Of a stretch of DNA of 41,606 bases, positions 1,498 through 36,690 are shown piece by piece. This DNA is from Bigelowiella natans CCMP2755 (lineage: Eukaryota > Protista > Cercozoa). A program made the translations under genes and the position numbers. Every line of letters begins with the position of its first letter. The stretch's first letter is position 1. Under the pieces are notes generated by a model. The model searched no databases. It had not been told where the DNA came from and saw only the letters and a program-made list of their open reading frames with translations. The stretch spans positions 1-41,606 of the forward strand of contig ADNK01002724.1 in NCBI GenBank assembly GCA_000320545.1, in the 5' to 3' direction.

Positions 1498-1538
<41 letters not shown>

Positions 1539-2097
1539 CCAAATTAGAAAGGAGAATGGAGATGTGAGAAATTCATCATCTTGTTGTTTTGAGAAAATGG
1601 TTTTCAGGATTTCAGGACGTTCTCACAAATCTCTTCCTCTCCTTCTCCCCCCCTTCCCTGCCCCCCCCCTCCCCTCTTTCTTCCCCTGTTATTGCCGTAC
1701 GGGTCGCTTTGATCTATCAGCATGACGAAGTCCTTGTCCAGCTTCGTTCCAGTCGTTAGTTTGACGATCTTCCGGTTAGGTTTGTCGTAGACTGTCTTCA
1801 GCGTGTGTTTGGAAGATGCAGCGACTCGCGTGATCTCCGACGTCATTTGCACGTCCGCGACGATCGTTAGCTCATAGTCTATCTCTGAGGCGTCGGCCCG
1901 GTTAATGGATTTAGCTTCCTCCTCCTCCTCCTCCTTAGCCTTTTGCCTTCGACGCTCCTCATCAGCACGGGCTTGGGCCTCACTCTGAATTGGTTACGAC
2001 GATGCCGTTGTCAGCGCGGGATGATGGTGGGGGTTGACAATGGTGAGAACACCGTAGACCTTGGCGCGTGTGCCAGCGATTGCGCGATTTGTGTGTA

Positions 2098-2145
<48 letters not shown>

Positions 2146-3356
2146 GGTGTTTGTGTTAGTTGTACACGTGCTTTGTTGAGCATGAAAATCAACAAGATCG
2201 ACAACATAGGGGCGATATTTACCGGTTTAAGGAAAAATGGATGAATGCGACATGGGGATTCTCCCCTCTTAAGATCTTAACCCTCCCTCCCCTCCCCACC
2301 TGTTTCATCATGTAGTCCATCAGCTGTTGATCTGACATACGAGCCATTTGCTGCTGCGTAAGAATTGGCACTTGTGGCTCCGGTTTCTTCTTATTTACTG
2401 TGGTCCCATCCCATGGGATATGGCCTTTATAGAAAGGAACGAAGGGGGGGGGGAGATTTTATTGCGATAGAACTTCTTGCCGTCGGATGTAAGCAATGCA
2501 CTAGTCGGGGAAAATGCCCTGAGCGCTAACTAGCCACCTACCATTCGAGACTAACGTAGGGAGCACGAATCGAACGCTGGGTCCTTCAGAATCAAGCTCA
2601 GAAACATAGGTAATCTTTATCTGGCAACTGAAGAATCACACAGAGTTGATGTTCGGTGAAAACCGTGGATGATTTTACGTACGCCTCTCGGTTCATCTCG
2701 CACCTTTCCTTCGGAAGCAGGTTACCGACGTGGCAGACAAACGTATTCTCTGTATCGGCTTTCTTCTCCAGGAGAGCTGCAACCTATTCATGCAGAGGAA
2801 AATCGCATTTTTAGACACGTAAAGTGCCGCATAGAACACGATGGGCATGGTGGAGATGCCGCCCCTGTGCACAAAATTCGCACCTGTTTATTTTTTACGG
2901 CGTCGTCGTAAGTTTTTTTGGCTTCCTTTTTCCCTTGAACAATCCCCTTGACAGCTTTGCCATTGATGCGCGCCTCAAAGCCGCACACTGCTGCATCACT
3001 CTCGATTGGGAAAACATACTTGACCTTTATGTTATTAAATCCGTGTGAATGGGAGGTGGAAAAATGGTTGGGGAATATAAGCAGGAGAAGGAGGAGACGG
3101 GAGAGGGACAAAATGAAGAGACCTCAATGGCCTTCGCGCCAAAGTTTGTGAATTTTTGTGTCAGAACTGTTCGGTTGCAGAAGTTGAGGATCTCCACCTA
3201 TGCAGCAAACGACATGACCACCGATGTTGCGTGCCAACGAAGAAAATCACATACCTTTGCATGCACGCTAGTGAGGGCAATCCTCGGCTTTTCCTTCGGG
3301 GTATCGACTGGGACGAGACCGCAGGCAGGGAGGGAGGGCGATGACGATGATGACAT
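1..3356 (-). CDS. VIT + vWA domain protein (VWA5A-like), multi-exon, 3' end runs off the window
   Basis: ATG 3356 MSSSSSPSLPACGLVP...IALTSVHAK. VIT exons VEILNFCNRTVLTQKFTN, VKYVFPIESDAAVCGFEARINGKAVKGIVQGKKEAKKTYDDAV, IKITYVSELD...VRFVLPT. vWA MIDAS EIVFLVDVSG/SM split by a phase-1 intron, then KETLQIFLNSLPTNCLFNVVAF and PRQVFLLTDGEV...RIFSFGIG. Confidence 0.9.
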
Positions 3357-4116
3357 TGCCCTTGACGAAGATTCTTGGAATATGAAGAAATGACGATATC
3401 TTCTCTCTATTTTACACCTGCGACATCAACATTTCGTACTTGCGACATCAAATTTTTCTCTATTTTACACATGCGACAAAGGATCTGCTGCTCCGAGACC
3501 CTCCGAGACATCGAGAGATTTTGGCTCTATTCTTCAAGCAGAGTCAATGTAAATTCTAGGATTAAAGACTCAGAAACCGCAGGAAATCATTTTGGGCATT
3601 TTTGCCCAAAACGAGTTTTGCCCAAAATGAGTCCTGTTGCGAAGAACGACTCACTTAGTAACCAAGGTGTGTGAAGTAAGCATTATTGGGTAAGAGTGAA
3701 CGAAAAAACACCTAAAAATATCCTTGACAAATTACATGGGTAGGTGTTATGAATTTTTTTAAAAAAAAGTCGGTCCTTAAATTTACATAGACTCCAAAGT
3801 GTGTCTCTTCGGTATTCTCTCGGCGCTTTGAGCCCGGAAAAGAAGCGAAATCCTGAAATCCTGGAAATCCGCGATTCAAATCCAGGCGCATAAATGAAAA
3901 AATCACCTGCTATTTCCTCCTGCGACACGGAAAATAAAACGTCGAACTAACATCGTAAGACCCAGGTCGGGTCAATGGTGTGGAGGTCAGGGCACTCCTT
4001 GCACATGAGACGTCCTTTCGCGCCGACGTATAGACCTGATTCCATGCTGCGTATGTCTGAGATTCAATGTATACATCTAGAATCAGTATAACCAACTAAA
4101 AAAGACTCACACCCGC
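3357..4116. promoter_or_regulatory. Divergent intergenic/promoter region (VIT-vWA and ARF-like) with repeated TGCGACA
   Basis: Lies between head-to-head ATGs (3356 -, 4117 +). TGCGACA at 3419, 3441, 3472, 3921; near-perfect repeat TCTCTATTTTACAC(C/A)TGCGACA ending at 3425 and 3478. Confidence 0.55.
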
Positions 4117-5232
4117 ATGGGAACCAACAATTCTGCTCAGCGCCCCATTGTGCATCTCGGAGGTACAAGACGACGGTGATGATGATGCCTATGAAGACAA
4201 CGATGATTGTACCAGTGACGAGCATGATGATCATGCTGATGATGGTCATTTAGTTAAATGAACAAGATGATTGTGGTAATGAAGATTATAGAGATGGCGC
4301 ATCGAATCGCACATGAAATATTATTTCGTTGCAGGAACTAACAATGCGGGGAAAACTGCCTTCCTGATTAGACTAGGTCTGAGCAAATTTAACGAGGAGT
4401 ATAAAGGGGAAATCGTCGACAGCATCACGACTACAAGCACTGTGTAAGTGAATTACTATTTACTACAATGAAAATAAAGACGATGATGATAATGATGATA
4501 ACAACGATGGTGATGACGGTATGGCCATGACGGTGGGATTGACAATGTGTGTAATAGTTACATCAATGGCATATTATGTCCCCACTTGTATTGCATTCTT
4601 CAAATATAACTCTATTGCGCACCCGACAGTACATTGTGGCCATGTGAGAACAACGATGATAGGCATTATAACAATGACAACGATGAAAACTTATGATGAC
4701 GACGATGGCAACGATAATGATAATAACGATGCCAATGAAATACATATGCAGCGGGACAAATAGAGAGGAGACGACACTTAAAGGCGTGAGGGTAGCTATG
4801 GTGGAAAGATCAGGAGGATTGAAGGCATACGGGCTATATCGATACATTAATGATCCCAATACGCCGAAGATGCTCGTATATATAGTCGACAGCAAGACCC
4901 CATCTCCAAATGAGAAGAATCTGATGACAAATACAAAATTACTGTTCCGCTACATCGTTGGGGACGAAACGATCAGTTGTGGGGCAGATAAGAATCTAGT
5001 ACCGTGTGACCTGTCCGCTGACGTTCCAATATTAGTTCTGGCGAATAAGCAAGATTTAGAGGGGGGCTTTACAGCATCTCAGGTGGCTGACCATTTAGGC
5101 CTTCGGGAGTATATGGCCTCCAAGTTCCCAGGTAGAGAGTGGGCATGTTTGCCGCTGAGCTTGAAGACTGGTGAAGGGCTGGACGGGGTTGTGAATTGGA
5201 TATCATCCCATGTCGGCAGAAAGACAAGATGA
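4117..5232 (+). CDS. Divergent ARF/ARL-family small GTPase (exons 4117-4162, 4335-4443, 4752-5232)
   Basis: MGTNNS myristoylation-type start, P-loop GTNNAGKT, switch I TSTVGTNREE, G4 ILVLANKQDL, G5 SLKTGEGLDGVVNWI. Splice phases are consistent; G3 is degenerate (VERSGG). Confidence 0.85.
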
Positions 5233-5840
5233 CGCACTGCGAAACAACACAGCATGCCGCCAAAAAGCGTGATCGATGTCTAGATGTGTAGTAATAGCAT
5301 GACGGAAAAACAAACGAACCGACACGCTCACAATCCGTTTACAATGCAATGGGCTGGTCACGTGTGCATGCGAGAGTGCAACGTATATGTTCATGAAGCG
5401 AAGTGTCATTTATTTATTTGTGTTTTCTGCGCTTTGACGGTGCAATGAATGTGCGCACCACACGCGCGTCTGCTCTCCATCACTAGATCCACAACGTGCA
5501 TGTATGCATGGGCGTCTGTCTTGGGTTGTTCCACAACTTTGCTGCAAGTGATCGAGCAGTTTTCTTGGCCGACCGTGCAACAAAAATCCAATTCTTTTGT
5601 TGACTTTCACAAGCAAAATGCATTCGGACATGGCGCGCACAACGCAGCAACGTGACGTGCCATTTCAGATTCTGCATCACATTAGACAAACACATCAGCG
5701 CTGATTGCCATCATTCAGTGATGATGATCGCATTGCTCCTTTCATTATAGACAACGTATTGCAATGTGTACATTATATAGATCACATTACTATAATAATT
5801 ATGTCTAATATTTTTAAGTCGGATGCAACAAAATGAATCA

Positions 5841-28479: not shown

Positions 28480-29310
28480 TGATAACCCAGCTTTAAGTCC
28501 GTTGATTTGAGCCGATTCGAAACATGGCAGTAAACACGCAAGTTTGGCAGGGGACATGTCTAGATTTACACTCACATGCTAGCATGGACAGCGTTGATGA
28601 TGATGACACTTTACAACGCAGCTGTGCACTAGTGCATTGGATTGTATAGCACGCCATTTGCTGCATGTATGCATTCCCATCATCTGCGTGCGGTGTGTTC
28701 CACATGCCACACATCTAGTGTCAGTAAGATGAACAGTGCAAACAATGTACGCAGTAATGCAAGTACAACATCTGGACATACAGCTAGCTATAGCATAGAT
28801 GCTCTACAGCTAGACAGTCTAGTGCGCTGAAATTTTTAAATCACATGATCTAGCTGTGCATCTCTAGACATAGCTAACTAGATAGATAGGCAATACTAGA
28901 ATACTCTAGCTGGCTAGCCAAGCTAGCTAGCTAGATCTCTAGGATCTAGAGGTGCTAGCTAAGCTGAGTGCTTGTAATCAATTCATTGCTTGCTCAAACG
29001 TCCAAAGCTAGCTAGCTAGCAAAGCCAGCTTGTCTGCATTGACATTGCTAGATTTGCATTACACCAACAAACAAATTGCTCACATCTCTAGCCCTCTCTA
29101 CCGTCTAGCCGTGAATAGTTCAGCTTTCTAGCTTTAGTCTAGATCTAGAGATCATGTAAAGTGAAGTAGCATCATATGTTGGGGAAATGGTATGACAAAC
29201 TGGCTAGTATTCATCATTGCGCAGGCTGTAATGAGTAGCTCTCACATCTCAGTGAATGTGGATACGGTGAAGCACATCGCATCAGGATCAGGATGTCTAG
29301 ATGTATGCAA
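28480..29310. repeat. CTAG-rich degenerate tract
   Basis: Very dense ctag/gctagc/tctaga words (e.g. 28906-28960, 29006-29020); non-coding. Confidence 0.45.
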
Positions 29311-29447
29311 ATACGGCCTATAAAAATTTGCTACTAAAAAGAAACATATGCAGTACGCAGTAATGATATAGGCCCAACCGATACATTAACGTTCATAACT
29401 TTAACTTGGTTATCTTTGATGTTGCTAAATTCAAGGCAACAATAACC

Positions 29448-31256
29448 CTACTGTGCTTCAAGGGAGTCCCGGTTGAAGCATTCGGCTGAATTCGCCCATT
29501 GGTTGATTATTGTGGTTGGTGTATTATCAGGATGCGTAATAAGAAGGTGCTGGTACACCGAGTCCCAGTTTTTGATGAGCGTTGAAAGTGGCACATCATT
29601 CTTTGGAAGGAAAGCTCTATCGATCTTCTCCTTAAACCCAAAGAAGTACTCAATTCTCGCTAGTTCAACATCGGTATTGCTACAAAGTTCTCCAAACTCG
29701 ACATTAAGTACTCTGTAGTCCACAATTTTGTTGAGGAACTTCTCTCGTACTTGCTGCTGTTGCGCGATCCAAGAAATACAATCATCAAAGAATTTTTCAG
29801 GAATAACCCACCCGTCAGTAGAGTATTTTCCAGACTTCCTCTGATATTCCTCAAAAATAGAGTAACAATGGCGAAGTCGATTATATCGTGAGAAACTCAC
29901 AATTTTCACGTCTCGTGATTCCACGTATGCCGCAACGTCATCTTCCCGATCCATTGGAATTTCATTAATCATCCACTCGAATCCCAAATACGCCTTAGGC
30001 ACACCTGGAGGTCCCCTTTAAAAATGAATTCATAATACATTAATGCATAATGTATCAGCAATCAGCAATCAGAAAGTAATATAACATACAACATTGATTT
30101 ACCAGAAAAGCATATCTAAAAGCTCTGCAGATTTGTTTGAGTGCATGTTCACATCCTCAGGAAGGGTGTGCGTTGGGTTCCAAGCTGACACACAATCTGA
30201 TAGTTGTGAATAGGTGGGGAAACAACTGTCTTTGTGTGTTAGAACTACGGAATGGTTGGAGAGAAGGGAGTGCAGCATTTCCTCCCCAGAATTCTGAATG
30301 GAAAGGAGGAAGTATTTGATATAGTATTTTGGAGGTTGCGATTCCACTTCTTGCAGAACCGTGGTATTCGTTTCCCTCTGCTCTTCTTCGTTCTTTGGAG
30401 GTTTACTACTTAAAAATTCAGCTTCATTCATATACTTGAGACCAAGTTCACGAGAGATTGTCTCAAACAAATCTACAGCTTCCTCTACGATTGAATTAAC
30501 CGGTCGTAGGGGATCGGTCACTTCGGATGATTCTTGTTCCTCAAACTCTGTAACTCCTGATGTTGGTTCCACATTAGAGTTTTCACTTTGTATTGCGGAC
30601 AAAGGCGTCGTTGGAATCTGGCTTGCAATAGCTGCTGCTTGCTGGTTAGTAATATTGTGTCCTTCGTCATCACTGCTTTGCTTAAAATCAGTATTAGGAT
30701 CATCTAATTGATCTCTTTGAACTTCAGCAACCATCGAGGGTGATTCAGTATCGTAATCCCAGGGCTCTATCTCTGAAATAGATTCGCTAATATGTGGCTT
30801 GGTCTCGATCCCAGTTTCTCTCACAGAGGCTTCGCTTTCAATATTCTGTTTAGCTCCAACGTCGAACAACTGCAATTGTTCATTTTGAGGCTTGACAATG
30901 GTGCTGTCAATAGACCCACTCTCAACGCCTTCTGTAAGTGAATCAGAGTTCAATTTTTCTTGGTTCACATTAGTGCTTAGCATTAAATTTCTTTTCGAAA
31001 GAACGGTAGGTTCATTGATGAAGGTGTCTTGCATCGCTCGAGATGCAGCAATAGCCTCCTCGGTGGCGTCATCGCCGAGCGGTACTAGAGGAGGAACAGT
31101 TACATTGTGGCTTGATTCAAATTGGAGATAGAAAGGATTTACGTCCTCCATCTTAGTTGCTTCTCTGGGGACACGCATCCATACTCCATGTGCTGGGAAG
31201 CCCAGCAGAATGAGCGTCGCCGCAATTGCCACAGGAAGAGTAGAAACGGGAGCCAT
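29448..31256 (-). CDS. Secretory-pathway protein with acidic S/T/E-rich stalk and C-terminal Stf0/NodH-like sulfotransferase fold (exons 30103-31256, 29448-30015)
   Basis: Signal peptide MAPVSTLPVAIAATLILLGFPAHG. YFLLSIQNSGEEMLHSLLSNH resembles the 5'-PSB RSGS..L..LL..HP motif; also LGFEWM, VKIVSFSRYNRLRHCYS (3'-PB-like), LNVEFGELCSNTDVELARIEYFFG and LSTLIKNWDSV. A phase-2 intron joins the two ORFs. Confidence 0.7.
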
Positions 31257-31569
31257 TAGCTCGAATGGAATACAAAAGGCAATTCAGCGCTGGGGCAACA
31301 AAGTGCAGCACAAAGATCTGATTAAAAAAAAGAGAGCAATTTATGATGGAAAAAAGGCCTGAAAACCTGAACTACGACAGCAAATTGCACCACACATCTG
31401 TCAAAAATCGCCCGTGTTGACTTGATGTTATTTCGTGTCGGATGGTGCGTGTGAAATGAAACTGCGAGCATCCATTCTAGCATTGATGTTTTGTCCCATG
31501 ATCTTTTCAGCTGCTCCAATGGAAACACGTGTTTCTTTCTTTCCATCTGTTTTGTTTGTTGTGACTGTT

Positions 31570-32210
31570 CAGACACAGTGTCATGGCAACAATTTCACGC
31601 CGTGCTAGCGTGGGTCACAGCACCAGAGCTAGCTTTTCGTGTGATCAATCCTCCTTCACACTGAAACAAACAAACACGTTTCTGCAAACATCCCTTTGTT
31701 CTGCCTGGACCTCTGCATCTTGTGTGGAACGTTTTGTCTCCCAGTTTGTCCGGTTGCGTGCACCCTTTTCTCATCGAGGATGCTGTTTGCTCTAGTGCTC
31801 TCTGTCTAGCTGTGTTGTCTAGTTGCGGCACGCAGCTTGCTAGCTTGCACTAGTGCATGCACAATGACATCTGAACAGACAAGCCAAAACACACCAAAAC
31901 ACATTGGCATGCACGTCTGAACATGCACAACACACACGTGCTGGCGCATGCACAATTTTCTGTGAAGTCGACTTCTCTTCCACTCATTGCTGCGGAAAGA
32001 GTCGATGAAGATGCAACACAAAATCAAGCAAGCTAGCAAGTGTGCTTTTCATCAAATTTGACAAAAATGAGAGACCGCAATGAATGCGAGCTTTCCATTG
32101 TTGCCACTGCAAGGCTAGCCTAGATTCCTATTGCTGTACTATCGATAAGACATGCTAATTCATACATAATCCGAATGAATTCCTAAAGGCTAACTTGTTA
32201 GCATGCATTC
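31570..32210. repeat. CTAG/CA-TG-rich degenerate tract between sulfotransferase-like and 7TM genes
   Basis: Same word bias as the other tracts; shares the 13-mer CGTGCTAGCGTGG (31601) with ~18450. Confidence 0.4.
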
Positions 32211-32230
32211 CCAACTTTCAGAGGGACCAC

Positions 32231-33548
32231 TTAGCTGCATAATTTCGGCCAAGGACGCCCATAGATATATAACCAATGGTATGAAACGTAAACCATTATG
32301 GCTCTTGCTACCGTGATACTATTTGGCCAGTTGCTTTCTGCATATATTTTTTCGTTTTCTTCCGAATATTTAGCGGAGCTGTTCAAAGCTTGAAGTCCCA
32401 ATGCTAACAACATAACAAACGCGATCACAGAAGTGGTTCCAAAAAAAATAAGAGTATAAATCAATCTGGAATTTAACGCCGATAGTTTGTTGATCCACAC
32501 CAGATTTCCACCAGTCGGAAGCCGTCTATTGAGATTAGCATTTACATTTTTCAGCCAGTTCTCGTCAACGTCTGCTTTAAATGACTTTTCAATAGGAGCA
32601 GCATGAACTTCGTTTATGTTTTCTGTCGTCACAGCTGAGCTTCCAACATTACGTTTCACATAGGAGGGACTAACTAAACGAGTGCTACTAGCGGTCTTCA
32701 ATGCAGAAGAATTGGAATTTCCTTTTAGGGGCAATTTTAATTCAGTGGTGCTATCAACCCGGGTTTGGGTCTGAGGTTCATGTGTCCTAGACTGGCTCTT
32801 AAGAGTTGATACATGAGAATGAATGTTTGTAATCAAAACGTAGCCTGTGTAGAACCCATATGGAGTAATGTGCAAATGCATAGACGCACAAGCTAGAAAT
32901 TGAATAGCCTCGTATCGTTTTTCATCCGTAATGAGAATAGCTGCAAAATAAAAGGCAGGAAACAAATGTTACGATGTCTTCTTCAAAAAGTCAAAACCAT
33001 TCTTTTATTTTTTACCGATCGTGCCTGCAATAGAAGCTATTATGATGTAGGCAATTGTACCATTAAACACAACTTCAAGATGTCTCGGAAGATGCGCAGT
33101 CATTCTTGCAGTGCCATACATGGTCTGCGTTAAGTTCTTAATGATGTAAATTATTGTAACATACATAGTCCCCTAAATACAAAATAATTATCATTTGACT
33201 GAACAATGTTGCTTATATTTCACGTATCAACCAAAAAGTATCCAGTCATTATTTGTATAAGCTGCCAGGGGCCTCTCGTTGGGCCTCGCGGAAGAAGTAT
33301 TGAGAACAAGATAGCTCCAAACATTAATGATGCAGTACCCCTGTGTGCAGGATGTATGTGACAAATTTATCCCCCACTACATTGCTATGTCATGCGCATG
33401 CATTGTGCGTGAGTCAGAATGATTACCAGAGAATTTTAACTCCTGACGTTCCACTCCAAGCCCCTTTTAGATAGATTTTCCATAGAGTCACTGGTAAGGA
33501 AATGCTGCTTGATACCAAAACGAATGCATCGAATGCAGTGGCCCTCAT
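32231..33548 (-). CDS. Orphan seven-transmembrane (GPCR-topology) protein, 365 aa (exons 33427-33548, 33232-33340, 33016-33172, 32231-32940)
   Basis: Exons total 1098 nt with compatible phases (2,0,1). Seven hydrophobic segments: AFDAFVLVSSSISLPVTLW; ILWGTASLMFGAILFSILL; LIQIMTGYFLGTMYVTIIYII; VVFNGTIAYIIIASIAGTIAILI; AIQFLACASMHLHITPYGFYTGYVLI; LIYTLIFFGTTSVIAFVMLLALGL; SITVARAIMVYVSYHWLYIYG. Long S/T-rich loop between TM5 and TM6. Confidence 0.7.
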
Positions 33549-34046
33549 CGTTGTTCCAAGCTCTTCGATGAGGTCGAACTTTTGCCTGTCGGCGTTCAGA
33601 TGATGCGCAGCTATGATAATGTTACGTGCGACAATTGCTATGATAATGTTACGTGCGACAATTATTTTATGTTGTCGCACTTATTTTGTGCGCTAATTTT
33701 GCGAAATTTGCTGATTAACTGATTGAGACTTGGGTCATGATGACCAACAGGTTTTGATGCTGGCAACTTTTTTCCAGCGGAATGCAGCTTCATCGAACGA
33801 TAACTGTGGCAATTCAAGAAGACGACAACATTTCTGCGCATTTTATCAACTGCTGGGACTTTAGTTGTGTGCAATAGATATGCTTCCTTTACGAAGACAT
33901 CATCCGAACTGTGTCGCACAAGATAATTTCAAGGGAATTTGGCTCATCTCTCGCCGGCTGTGATTAGAAATGTTGTGGTTGTCGCAGTTCTAAAATTGAT
34001 GTGATATTAGTATAAATCGTCGGGTATTAGTGCTGTTTTTCAGGCA
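33549..34046. promoter_or_regulatory. Divergent promoter region shared by the 7TM and G-alpha genes
   Basis: Head-to-head orientation; TGCGACA/TGTCGCA at 33627, 33654, 33673, 33912, 33980. Confidence 0.55.
33610..33663. repeat. Perfect 27-bp tandem duplication GCTATGATAATGTTACGTGCGACAATT x2
   Basis: Read directly at 33610-33636 and 33637-33663. Confidence 0.95.
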
Positions 34047-35821
34047 ATGCGATGTTCGGGAAAAATTGTTAATCATGCACTAAATCGAACAATGGGTCCC
34101 CACCTGGCAAAATTGAATTTTGAATTCCCAAATAGAACGAGCTCTCGAACATGATGGTGTTGTTTTTTTAAACTGTACAGGCGCAGGGTTGGCGCGACGA
34201 AAACCGATTGATGCTAGTGATAGGAGTATCATTAAACATATTAATTCCGTGACGTCCACATCAGAGACTGAGCAGGATGAAAAGATACAGAATCCACTGT
34301 TATACTATAGAGAAAAGGTCCTCATCCTTGGAGCATCCCAATGCGGAAAGTCCACAATCTTTAAACAAATGCTACAGCTCTATGGTACTGAAAAGTTTGG
34401 CGACAACAAATTTGACAGGTCTAGTCTGATCGAGATTCTAGAAGATCATTTCGTTCATTGGTTTAGTTCTCTCCTTAAATACCCTGCAATATTTGCAAAC
34501 ATTCCTAGTGGAAACAAATACGTTGGAACTATTAGTAGAAGGGAGCTGTACGAAGTATTAGTTCCTTTTAAAATGGGAAAGTGCATAGTAAATATCGTAC
34601 ATGAATATGATTGCTGGAGAAGTATTTATCACTTAAGCCCTGAGATGGAAAAGTTGAGCGCTGAAACCCTCGAATGTCTTATGGATATGAAGATGCAATC
34701 GAGTGAGAAGGTGCACCTTTGCAAGAACAAATTAGAGAAATTATGGAATTGTCCAGCCATACAGCACGCCTATGAAAGACAAACGGATCCAGGAATAGCC
34801 GAAACGATGCCATATTTCATGGAGAAAGTTTCAAAGATCTTAAACCCGTCTTATCTGCCTACATTCGAAGATTTTTTGAAAGATTGCACTCGAACTAGTG
34901 GACTAGTAGAGGCCAGAATTAGAGATGGCGACATCGAATACGTGACATTCGATTTAGGTGGTGCACGAAGTGAGCGCCGGAAATGGATCCATTGGTAACG
35001 CTAGTTTTTCACATAGTTGCTTCTGCTTATCAAATTGGAAAGATATTACGAATGAATAATCACTCCTCTTAATATTTAAGTGTTTCAGATACTTCGTACA
35101 TAATATTTGTTTCGGCTATTAGTGCATACAATCGGGTTACAGCATTGCTTGCCTTTACATAGCATACTACAAATATGGCTTACTAATTAATACTATTTAG
35201 ACTCTGTTTGAAGACACAAATTCGAATTCGCTCGTAGAGGTTCCAAAAAGTGCTTGTTTGGCGGTATTTGACTAAGATGTCCTTTTTACAGGATATAGAT
35301 CTTTTTTCTGATGTGATCGGTAGCCCTTGGAGTCAAAATGTGCAAGTAATGCTAGTTTTAAATAAGATTGACATATTCAAGGAAAAAATTAAAAGGTAAG
35401 TAGTTGAGAAATGAAACATTGATATTCAAAAACTATGCAGCAACAAATAGTGAGTATTGTAATTCCCAGGGTTCCCATTACAGTGTGTCCCGCCTTGAAA
35501 GGTTATAAAGGGATTCAAACAGGTTAGTAAAAATCTATTATATATTTCTCACACATTACCGCACATTATAAACTGTACATGCTCAGCGGTGTATGCTTTT
35601 ATGCTAAGATTACGAGGCATCATTGCAACATATCAAGGAAAGATTCTTAGAAGTGGCGATGAAATGGGTTCTCCTTTTATTTCATCACCCATTATCAAAA
35701 CTTCAGTTGTTCTCATAATATTTAACAGGATCGAAACTGTGCTCAAAGAATTAAATTAGTTACATTGTGTTCTTTCGATTCGAAAGCCGTTAAGGATGCT
35801 TTTGAATCTTTGCGCAGATGA
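34047..35821 (+). CDS. Heterotrimeric G-protein alpha subunit, catalytically divergent; 5' end uncertain (exons ...-34994, 35081-35135, 35201-35239, 35292-35395, 35470-35522, 35609-35667, 35729-35821)
   Basis: KVLILGASQCGKSTIFKQM, LWNCPAIQHAYER, YLPTFEDFLKDCTRTSGLVE, FDLGGARSERRKWIHC, IIFVSAISAYNRTLFED, LVLNKIDIFKEKI, LCSFDS; six phase-consistent GT-AG introns; stop at 35819-35821. Confidence 0.92.
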
Positions 35822-35929
35822 GATTCACTTGAAGACCCATCAGAAATCAGAACCACATATAAGTGAGAGGTTCGCTCTGCTACATACATTCATTAAATTT
35901 ATCTATTGTATGGATTTGCATTTAATACA

Positions 35930-36690
35930 GCAAGCTTGACATTTGTCATTACTAGATTACATTGCTCGTCAAAGTTACTAAATTAATCAGGCTCAATTGT
36001 AGACATCCACGCACAAACTTTGGGCTTGGCAATTGACACAGCTTCTTGCCACTTGTCACATGTCTAGATCGTCTAGTCTCTAGAGCTAGCTAGAAGGTGA
36101 TGCTGTGTTGTGATGCAGTCTACCAAAATTGGGCTGACAGCTGTGTGAATTAGATTTCTTCGCGCACTTGCCTCTAGATGTGTCTAAGTGTCTAGAGTGC
36201 GCTTAAATTCAATTTGCATCACATCAATCCGTGGATGACTAGATGATTGTAGACCGAACGCAGAGCTCCGCATGGATCACAGCGGCTACGCTAGTTTTCA
36301 CTGAGCAACATTCTAGCATTGAACATTGCTAGATTGCTAGAACAAATGAGCGAGGCTAGGCGTCACTAGCTAGCTAGGTCAATCGAGCACGGCAAAATTT
36401 AGATGTGGATTTCGATCTACTACAACACGACACAACCAACAAACCGTGCTACAAATGAATAATGAATGCAATGCACTGCTATTAGACAACATGCACAGCT
36501 AGACAGCATGCTAGCATGCACGTTGCTAGCAGCTAGGTTGTTGTTGCATTTGTCTAGTCTGTCATCAATATCGTACATTGACATGTAGCCTTTACCATGC
36601 CTCAAATGTGTTGGAAACTTAGTTGTAATGCATTATCTACGCTGGTACGGTTGACTGCCTTACGGCTAGCAGTGTGTTCATCTCTAGATC
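35930..36690. repeat. CTAG-rich degenerate tract
   Basis: Dense tctaga/gctagc words (36062-36095, 36355-36378, 36498-36537); non-coding region between convergent genes. Confidence 0.45.

Follow-up and report, generated by a model that had tools for sequence, protein, structure and literature searches.

Two genes on opposite strands face away from each other across a short gap, one coding for a seven-helix membrane protein and the other for a G-protein alpha subunit (G-alpha): are they a receptor and its own G protein, or simply neighbours? The question is raised by contig ADNK01002724.1 of assembly GCA_000320545.1, nuclear DNA of the chlorarachniophyte alga Bigelowiella natans CCMP2755. Its 41,606 nucleotides, called the window in what follows, were described in an earlier note, made from the sequence alone, which proposed that positions 32231 to 35821 hold a dedicated module: a co-transcribed pair in which the seven-helix protein would anchor, inhibit or serve as effector of an always-on G-alpha, rather than act as its guanine nucleotide exchange factor (GEF). 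Our answer, which we hold to be probable though by no means assured, is that the seven-helix protein is a 365-amino-acid member of an undescribed family with the fold of G protein-coupled receptors (GPCRs), restricted to chlorarachniophytes, and that its adjacency to the G-alpha gene is, on present evidence, best regarded as that of two neighbours that may have promoter sequence in common, rather than as proof of a functional pair.

The structure of the gene

The seven-helix gene lies on the minus strand. An exon-wise script check gives it four exons, all with GT..AG borders and none with an internal stop, that add up to 1098 nucleotides, or 365 codons and a stop, which recovers the spliced protein of 365 amino acids announced in the earlier note. 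Exon 1 (33427..33548, 122 nucleotides, donor gtaatc) opens with the ATG at 33548 and codes for an N-terminal tail of four amino acids, helix 1, marked by a hydropathy peak, and the first inner loop. Exon 2 (33232..33340, 109 nucleotides, acceptor cacag, donor gttgat) holds helix 2, an outer loop with the conserved motif PRGPxxGPW, which aligns across the family described below, and the start of helix 3. The remainder of this helix, together with the second inner loop and helix 4, is found in exon 3 (33016..33172, 157 nucleotides, acceptor tatttag, donor gtaaaa), which aligns with the family and with P0001, the protein of a transcript from Bigelowiella longifila. Exon 4 (32231..32940), 70% identical to P0001, carries in order the motif TDExRY, helix 5, a long loop, helix 6, a loop with the motif S-x-x-K/R-YSE, helix 7, a GRPW...Cys tail and the stop at 32231-32233. 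The junction between exons 3 and 4 is also seen in P0001, and the intron directly ahead of the TDE motif is kept in all paralogues.

The translations of the four exons are present, in order, in residues 1-339 of the public JGI gene model P0007 (Bigna1/81125), the first three as residues 1-40, 42-77 and 78-129. This ab initio model of 979 amino acids is a chimera: it splices at a GT near 32311, leaves out helix 7, and is fused downstream to an acidic open reading frame (ORF) of 385 amino acids (30099-31256) and to another of 184 (29448-30002), spanning 29448-33548 in all. Since every paralogue retains helix 7 and the end formed by GGPW and a cysteine, inside the same last exon, the stop at 32231-32233 is the likely true end of the gene.

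Seven helices and their predicted orientation

The exons were searched one by one and hydropathy was computed exon by exon, while the fold was taken from full-length paralogues. Hydropathy is strong for helices 1, 2, 4 and 6, and weaker for helices 5 and 7 and for helix 3, which lies across the junction of exons 2 and 3. Seven segments are also found in the full-length paralogues P0010, P0006, P0024 and P0030. With the two AlphaFold models discussed below, these profiles bear out the seven helices of the earlier note, and its tiny tails are there as well, four amino acids at the N-terminus and nine at the C-terminus.

The earlier note had also singled out a loop of about 110 amino acids, rich in serine and threonine, between helices 5 and 6. 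The region that codes for it (32498..32830, minus strand) sits in the position of the third intracellular loop of receptors and has the expected length, 111 amino acids. Its richness in serine and threonine is only mild, 24% against 19% over the whole exon; it is variable, rich in lysine and arginine (14 residues), and corresponds to segments of low predicted local distance difference test (pLDDT) score in both paralogue models. Between B. natans and B. longifila, identity is 81-92% in the flanking helices and 61% in this loop. With helices far better conserved than the loop between the two species, the protein looks to be under selection, and we take the minus-strand gene to be a genuine, selectively maintained seven-helix gene.

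As to orientation, counts over the family place the enrichment in lysine and arginine in loops 1, 3 and 5 and in the tail; the loop that joins helix 6 to helix 7 has an acidic character. For P0010, an orientation with the N-terminus outside and the C-terminus inside would put 20 lysines and arginines inside and 6 outside, a positive-inside count that is itself a prediction. The helix 6-7 loop also holds an N-x-S/T sequon that B. longifila retains, and this, like the cysteine-rich tails of the paralogues, agrees with an outside N-terminus. We infer that the N-terminus is outside and the C-terminus inside.

A family of seven-helix proteins

A family profile was built from the last exon of nine sequences and searched against 1.84 billion cluster representatives. 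It matches 24 proteins at E<=0.001, and those that could be traced are B. natans gene models, MMETSP and JGI transcripts, and three genes of Amorphochlora amoebiformis. Applied to the six-frame translation of the B. natans genome, the same profile yields 19 matches at about 16 loci on 13 contigs, and members are also present in B. longifila and Amorphochlora. A word-based protein search with exon 4 has the B. longifila orthologue as its sole match, and one with the family alignment found nothing further. The earlier note had called the gene an orphan: this stands as far as Pfam and PDB sequences are concerned, neither of which it matches, and falls in that the gene belongs to a family with many loci in its own genome and with members in two other species.

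Four motifs are conserved in the family: the loop from helix 2 to helix 3 has PRGPxxGPW, TDExRY follows helix 4, the loop from helix 6 to helix 7 has S-x-x-R/K-YSE, and the proteins close with GGPW and then a cysteine. Neither the exons nor the 24 members match any known GPCR family profile (7tm_1, 7tm_2, 7tm_3, Dicty_CAR, STE2, Git3, Frizzled and others) at E<=5. The exons have no match to the RGS profile PF00615, and a genome-wide RGS search, which is insensitive, gives no signal at the locus. Helix 7 of the protein has no lysine, that is, no retinal-binding lysine of the microbial rhodopsins. No match to the HlyIII (PAQR) profile is found among the 24 members, and their predicted topology is opposite to the inside N-terminus of that family. 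We describe the family as a previously undescribed group of seven-helix membrane proteins restricted to chlorarachniophytes.

Three members of the family are found within 9 kb of one another in C2305:24130-33017, two of them convergent neighbours and the third about 6 kb off, an arrangement that indicates recent tandem duplication.

The fold of two paralogues

Two full-length paralogues were folded with AlphaFold, using the family alignment. The model of P0010 (340 amino acids) has a pLDDT of 77, a predicted template modelling (pTM) score of 0.68, and seven long helices; that of P0030 (444 amino acids) has a pLDDT of 70, a pTM of 0.62, and again seven long helices. In an exhaustive VIA-align comparison, P0010 is closest to the class D GPCR Ste2, with a Z of 12.6 over 251 aligned residues and a root-mean-square deviation of 5.2, followed by GPR3 and GPR6, and most of its top 50 matches are GPCRs. 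For P0030 the list is headed by GPR6 (Z 15.2, 243 aligned residues, deviation 4.2), GPR3 (14.5), GPR34 (14.5) and CB2 (13.9), and about 45 of the top 50 are GPCRs. For both paralogues, the best structural matches are often receptors in their G-protein-bound form, and in both models helices 5 and 6 reach far past the membrane, with a disordered loop between them.

Other folds rank lower. Against P0010, AdipoR2 reaches a Z of 10.8, TMEM87A 9.9 and rhodopsins 9-10, two to three units under the GPCRs; TMEM87A reaches 12.7 against P0030. The models thus support a GPCR-type fold for the family, and not a transporter or enzyme fold, which is not a proof of homology. The outcomes that the earlier note had named as fatal to its proposal, a number of helices other than seven or the fold of a transporter or enzyme, did not appear: the paralogue models have seven helices and GPCRs as their best structural matches.

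The neighbouring G-alpha gene

On the plus strand, the region 34181..35821 holds a G-alpha gene with several exons, whose first large exon runs to 34994 and whose stop is at 35819-35821, the exon junctions being those of P0038. It matches PF00503 at 114 bits (the cut-off is 48.8), and the locus is also found when that profile is searched against the genome. The first large ORF opens at 34117, with no in-frame ATG ahead of its P-loop, and conservation with a transcript that resembles B. longifila sets in only near 34181, at a CAG acceptor; no start codon or first exon could be placed in either species (34092-34181 in the window, positions 1-100 of the transcript contig).

The earlier note considered this G-alpha atypical, and so it is. 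Its P-loop reads GASQCGKST, its switch I KDCTRTSG and its switch II DLGGARSE. These motifs were aligned by eye to the canonical motifs of G-alpha-i, with P-loop GAGESGKS: in this alignment the catalytic arginine of switch I is replaced by a cysteine, and the catalytic glutamine of switch II by an alanine. The protein of the B. longifila-like transcript, 79% identical, has the same unusual residues in the P-loop and both switches, which argues that the gene is maintained. Beyond Bigelowiella, the next best database match is 29% identical.

The two proteins also share an early end. The B. natans protein stops after FESLRR and the B. longifila-like one after ESLRKSI, 12-15 residues short of the canonical alpha5 tail, a shortfall common to both species (35729-35821 in the window, about 1400-1500 in the transcript contig). 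The alpha5 tail is the part of a G-alpha that inserts into the activated receptor, and its main receptor contact. Because this tail is 12-15 residues short, the guess of the earlier note that the seven-helix protein is not a classical GEF for its neighbour fits. A G-alpha whose catalytic residues and alpha5 tail are gone, and which is conserved all the same, is a natural experiment on what a G-alpha does without a GTPase cycle.

The transcript used in these comparisons, a JGI 3300017007 contig of 2014 nucleotides, reads SLVEVSISY and a stop at a place where P0038 runs into the next exon; at least one intron being retained, it is partly unspliced.

Is the pairing more than position?

The two genes are indeed head-to-head on opposite strands, as the earlier note said, at a distance close to the 0.5 kb that it gave: the gap measures 0.57-0.63 kb, counted from the ATG at 33548 to the ORF opening at 34117 or to the start of conservation near 34181. 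Genes so arranged are not co-transcribed, and this part of the claim has to be withdrawn: they share a promoter region at most. A gap of 0.6 kb between divergent genes is nothing out of the ordinary where, as in this genome, genes come at about one per 4 kb. The region between the two genes (33549..34180, from the ATG of one to the start of conservation of the other) is unusual in one respect only, a perfect tandem duplication of 27 base pairs, in two copies, at 33610-33663; the 27-mer occurs nowhere else in the 91-Mb B. natans genome at up to 3 mismatches. The G+C content is 0.34-0.41 over 29001-36000, apart from one 1-kb bin at 0.47, against 0.43-0.54 in most other parts of the window.

How surprising is such a neighbourhood? 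The profile PF00503 has 96 exon-level matches in the B. natans genome, which merge into about 34 G-alpha loci. This agrees with the lineage-specific expansion of G-alpha genes described in this species by de Mendoza et al. 2014 (PMC3971589), where B. natans stands among the protists with the largest independent expansions of both G-alpha and RGS genes. Comparison of the contig lists for the roughly 16 family loci and 34 G-alpha loci shows that a family member and a G-alpha gene share a contig in two cases only, the present locus and C546, with 19 kb between them on the latter; nor does the number of any family contig come directly before or after that of a G-alpha contig. In Amorphochlora, a tblastn search finds no G-alpha exon within 10 kb of either of two family loci. 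Other head-to-head pairs, which the earlier note had suggested looking for, are thus found neither next to the other 15 or so family loci in B. natans nor around these two.

The B. natans genome has about 21,700 genes. By chance, about 0.05 neighbouring pairs of a G-alpha gene and a member of this family are expected, and a few tenths of a pair if any GPCR-like gene is accepted; since the family was not chosen in advance, the second estimate is the fair comparison. When the profiles Dicty_CAR, 7tm_2 and 7tm_1 are run against the six-frame translation of the genome they recover one locus only, being too insensitive on intron-rich genes to provide a base rate for the adjacency of GPCR and G-alpha genes. 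A scan of metagenome contigs for orthologous loci found none, and P0001 and P0024, looked up exactly, matched no contig.

One other arrangement was considered as a receptor pair and rejected, an RGS gene beside a G-alpha gene on contig C2963, which is a tandem or fused RGS protein without seven helices. In the segment C2963:103000-112999, an ORF of 942 amino acids with an RGS domain (2796-5624, minus strand) ends 31 nucleotides upstream of a G-alpha ORF of 420 amino acids (1503-2765, minus strand) that has a long N-terminal extension and the P-loop GPGQSGKST; the two form either a tandem pair, RGS then G-alpha, or a single fused gene.

Discussion

The family is most likely a lineage-specific set of receptor-type seven-helix proteins, and the alga that carries it has G-alpha genes in very large number. 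Under the predicted topology, the motifs PRGPxxGPW, TDExRY and S-x-x-R/K-YSE would all lie in outer loops and could together make up one outer face. It is at this face, or within the bundle, that a small ligand or partner might be sensed, as there is no N-terminal domain. On the other side of the membrane, helices 5 and 6 would extend into the cytosol with their variable, disordered loop, whose basic residues, serines and threonines make it a likely site of phosphorylation or partner docking, and the cysteine that directly follows GGPW may carry a lipid. Any interaction between the protein and the neighbouring G-alpha would have to be non-canonical.

A number of observations weigh against this reading. 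The orientation is a predicted one, and the folded proteins are paralogues only 17-24% identical to the protein of the window. The comparison of P0010 with the PDB by Foldseek, a tool that the earlier note had suggested, found nothing at E<=0.001, even if its weak rows are mostly class A GPCRs, and a structure search of the ESM Atlas reached a TM-score of 0.45 at best. Helical bundles can reach a Z of about 13 in VIA-align without any kinship, and the values of 12-15 observed here are near that level. Searches with hmmscan found no Pfam family on the exons, and none that recurs among the 24 members, at E<=5; PDB sequences give 0 matches to the family profile at E<=10. By inspection of the family alignment, the motifs DRY in helix 3, CWxP in helix 6 and NPxxY in helix 7 are absent, and all that is kept in their stead is a lysine or arginine close to where helix 3 ends on the inner side, together with the GGPW that follows helix 7. 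Lastly, with respect to mere neighbourhood, the chance expectation of 0.05 would be low, and would speak for a functional tie, had the family been specified beforehand.

The absent motifs and the tiny N-terminus open the way to a protein that is not a receptor at all: a trafficking or scaffold protein of the TMEM87, GPR107, GPR137 or TOM1 type, or a membrane hydrolase akin to the PAQRs, sharing with receptors a generic bundle of seven helices. Weak feature neighbours in the ESM Atlas, the THH1/TOM1-3 cluster at 0.84 and the GPR137B cluster at 0.79, point that way, as do AdipoR2 and TMEM87A among the structural matches. However, these Atlas scores fall short of what counts as meaningful, the 24 members have no Pfam match to HlyIII, Lung_7-TM_R, THH1_TOM1-3 or GPR137, and luminal domains, GOLD included, are absent; in both structure searches GPCRs rank above these folds, and the predicted outside N-terminus is the opposite of that of PAQRs. 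We regard this explanation as unlikely. That the gene is not functional, whether as ORFs that line up by chance or as a paralogue in decay, is scarcely credible: the public model is chimeric and lacks helix 7, and no B. natans transcript of the gene is among the sequences found, but none of its four exons is broken by a stop, their splice sites are canonical, its orthologue is transcribed and conserved as a membrane protein under selection would be, in its helices far more than in its loop, and all the family motifs are retained.

There remains the dedicated module, in which the seven-helix protein and a GTPase-dead G-alpha would be expressed from a shared bidirectional promoter, the former tethering, sequestering or being regulated by a permanently GTP-bound G-alpha without acting as its exchange factor. 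Its advocates could invoke the head-to-head arrangement with its gap of barely 0.6 kb, the GPCR-type fold whose best matches are often bound to G proteins, the conservation of both genes in B. longifila, at 70% identity for one and 79% for the other, unusual G-alpha residues included, and the low chance expectation computed for the family. However, that expectation is several-fold higher when estimated fairly, for a family that was not specified beforehand, and the background of G-alpha genes is high. None of the other 15 or so family loci adjoins a G-alpha gene, the two Amorphochlora loci have none nearby, and this G-alpha is missing the C-terminal portion of alpha5, where a receptor would make its main contact. 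What the idea has to go on is adjacency, so we treat it as a positional lead of low probability, and the module as quite unlikely. Its most specific form is very unlikely: a hard-wired pair, expressed from one bidirectional promoter of 0.6 kb, in which the GPCR-fold protein would hold or gate, through the extensions of helices 5 and 6 and the third loop, a permanently GTP-bound, alpha5-truncated G-alpha specific to Bigelowiella. If true, such a pair would be receptor-G-protein signalling without a nucleotide cycle, a new signalling logic.

The reading that we prefer, a family of GPCR-shaped proteins one of which happens to neighbour a G-alpha gene, has its own interest. Few receptors of B. natans can be recognised from their sequences. 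A set of about 16 GPCR-shaped proteins that escape detection by profiles is a plausible part of the missing receptor repertoire, and offers concrete candidates for the question whether canonical receptor-G-protein coupling exists in Rhizaria.

Comparison with known systems

The closest likeness is to GPCRs, namely the class A orphans GPR6, GPR3 and GPR34 and the class D receptor Ste2, whose helices are arranged as in the paralogue models (Z of 15.2, 14.5, 14.5 and 12.6 respectively, with 243-253 residues aligned). The predicted orientation is the same; helices 5 and 6 likewise reach into the cytosol in the models, with a third inner loop that is long and disordered, and a cysteine again comes just after helix 7. 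The likeness is at the level of the fold only: the family has no detectable sequence similarity to the Pfam families or PDB chains of GPCRs and none of their three class A motifs, its own conserved motifs are in the outer loops, and the protein of the window has tails of four and nine amino acids.

A known precedent for a seven-helix protein that regulates an always-on G-alpha otherwise than as a GEF is given by the 7TM-RGS receptors, such as those of the plant AtRGS1 type. B. natans has proteins that combine seven helices with an RGS domain, and RGS genes in large number (PMC3971589). The protein described here differs from them in having neither an RGS domain nor room for one in its nine-residue C-terminal tail, and the neighbouring G-alpha lacks the catalytic arginine and glutamine that a GTPase-activating protein would assist. 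The THH1, TOM1, TOM3 and GPR137 proteins are, like the family, eukaryotic seven-helix proteins with short tails, and they are its weak neighbours in feature space; unlike receptors, they do not appear near the top of the structural matches, their feature scores fall short of significance, and no member of the family has the corresponding Pfam match.

As for the G-alpha, it is small, short at its alpha5 end and known only from Bigelowiella, unlike the extra-large and other atypical G-alphas that have lost GTPase residues, with which it shares a recognisable PF00503 domain, an altered P-loop and the loss of both the arginine and the glutamine.

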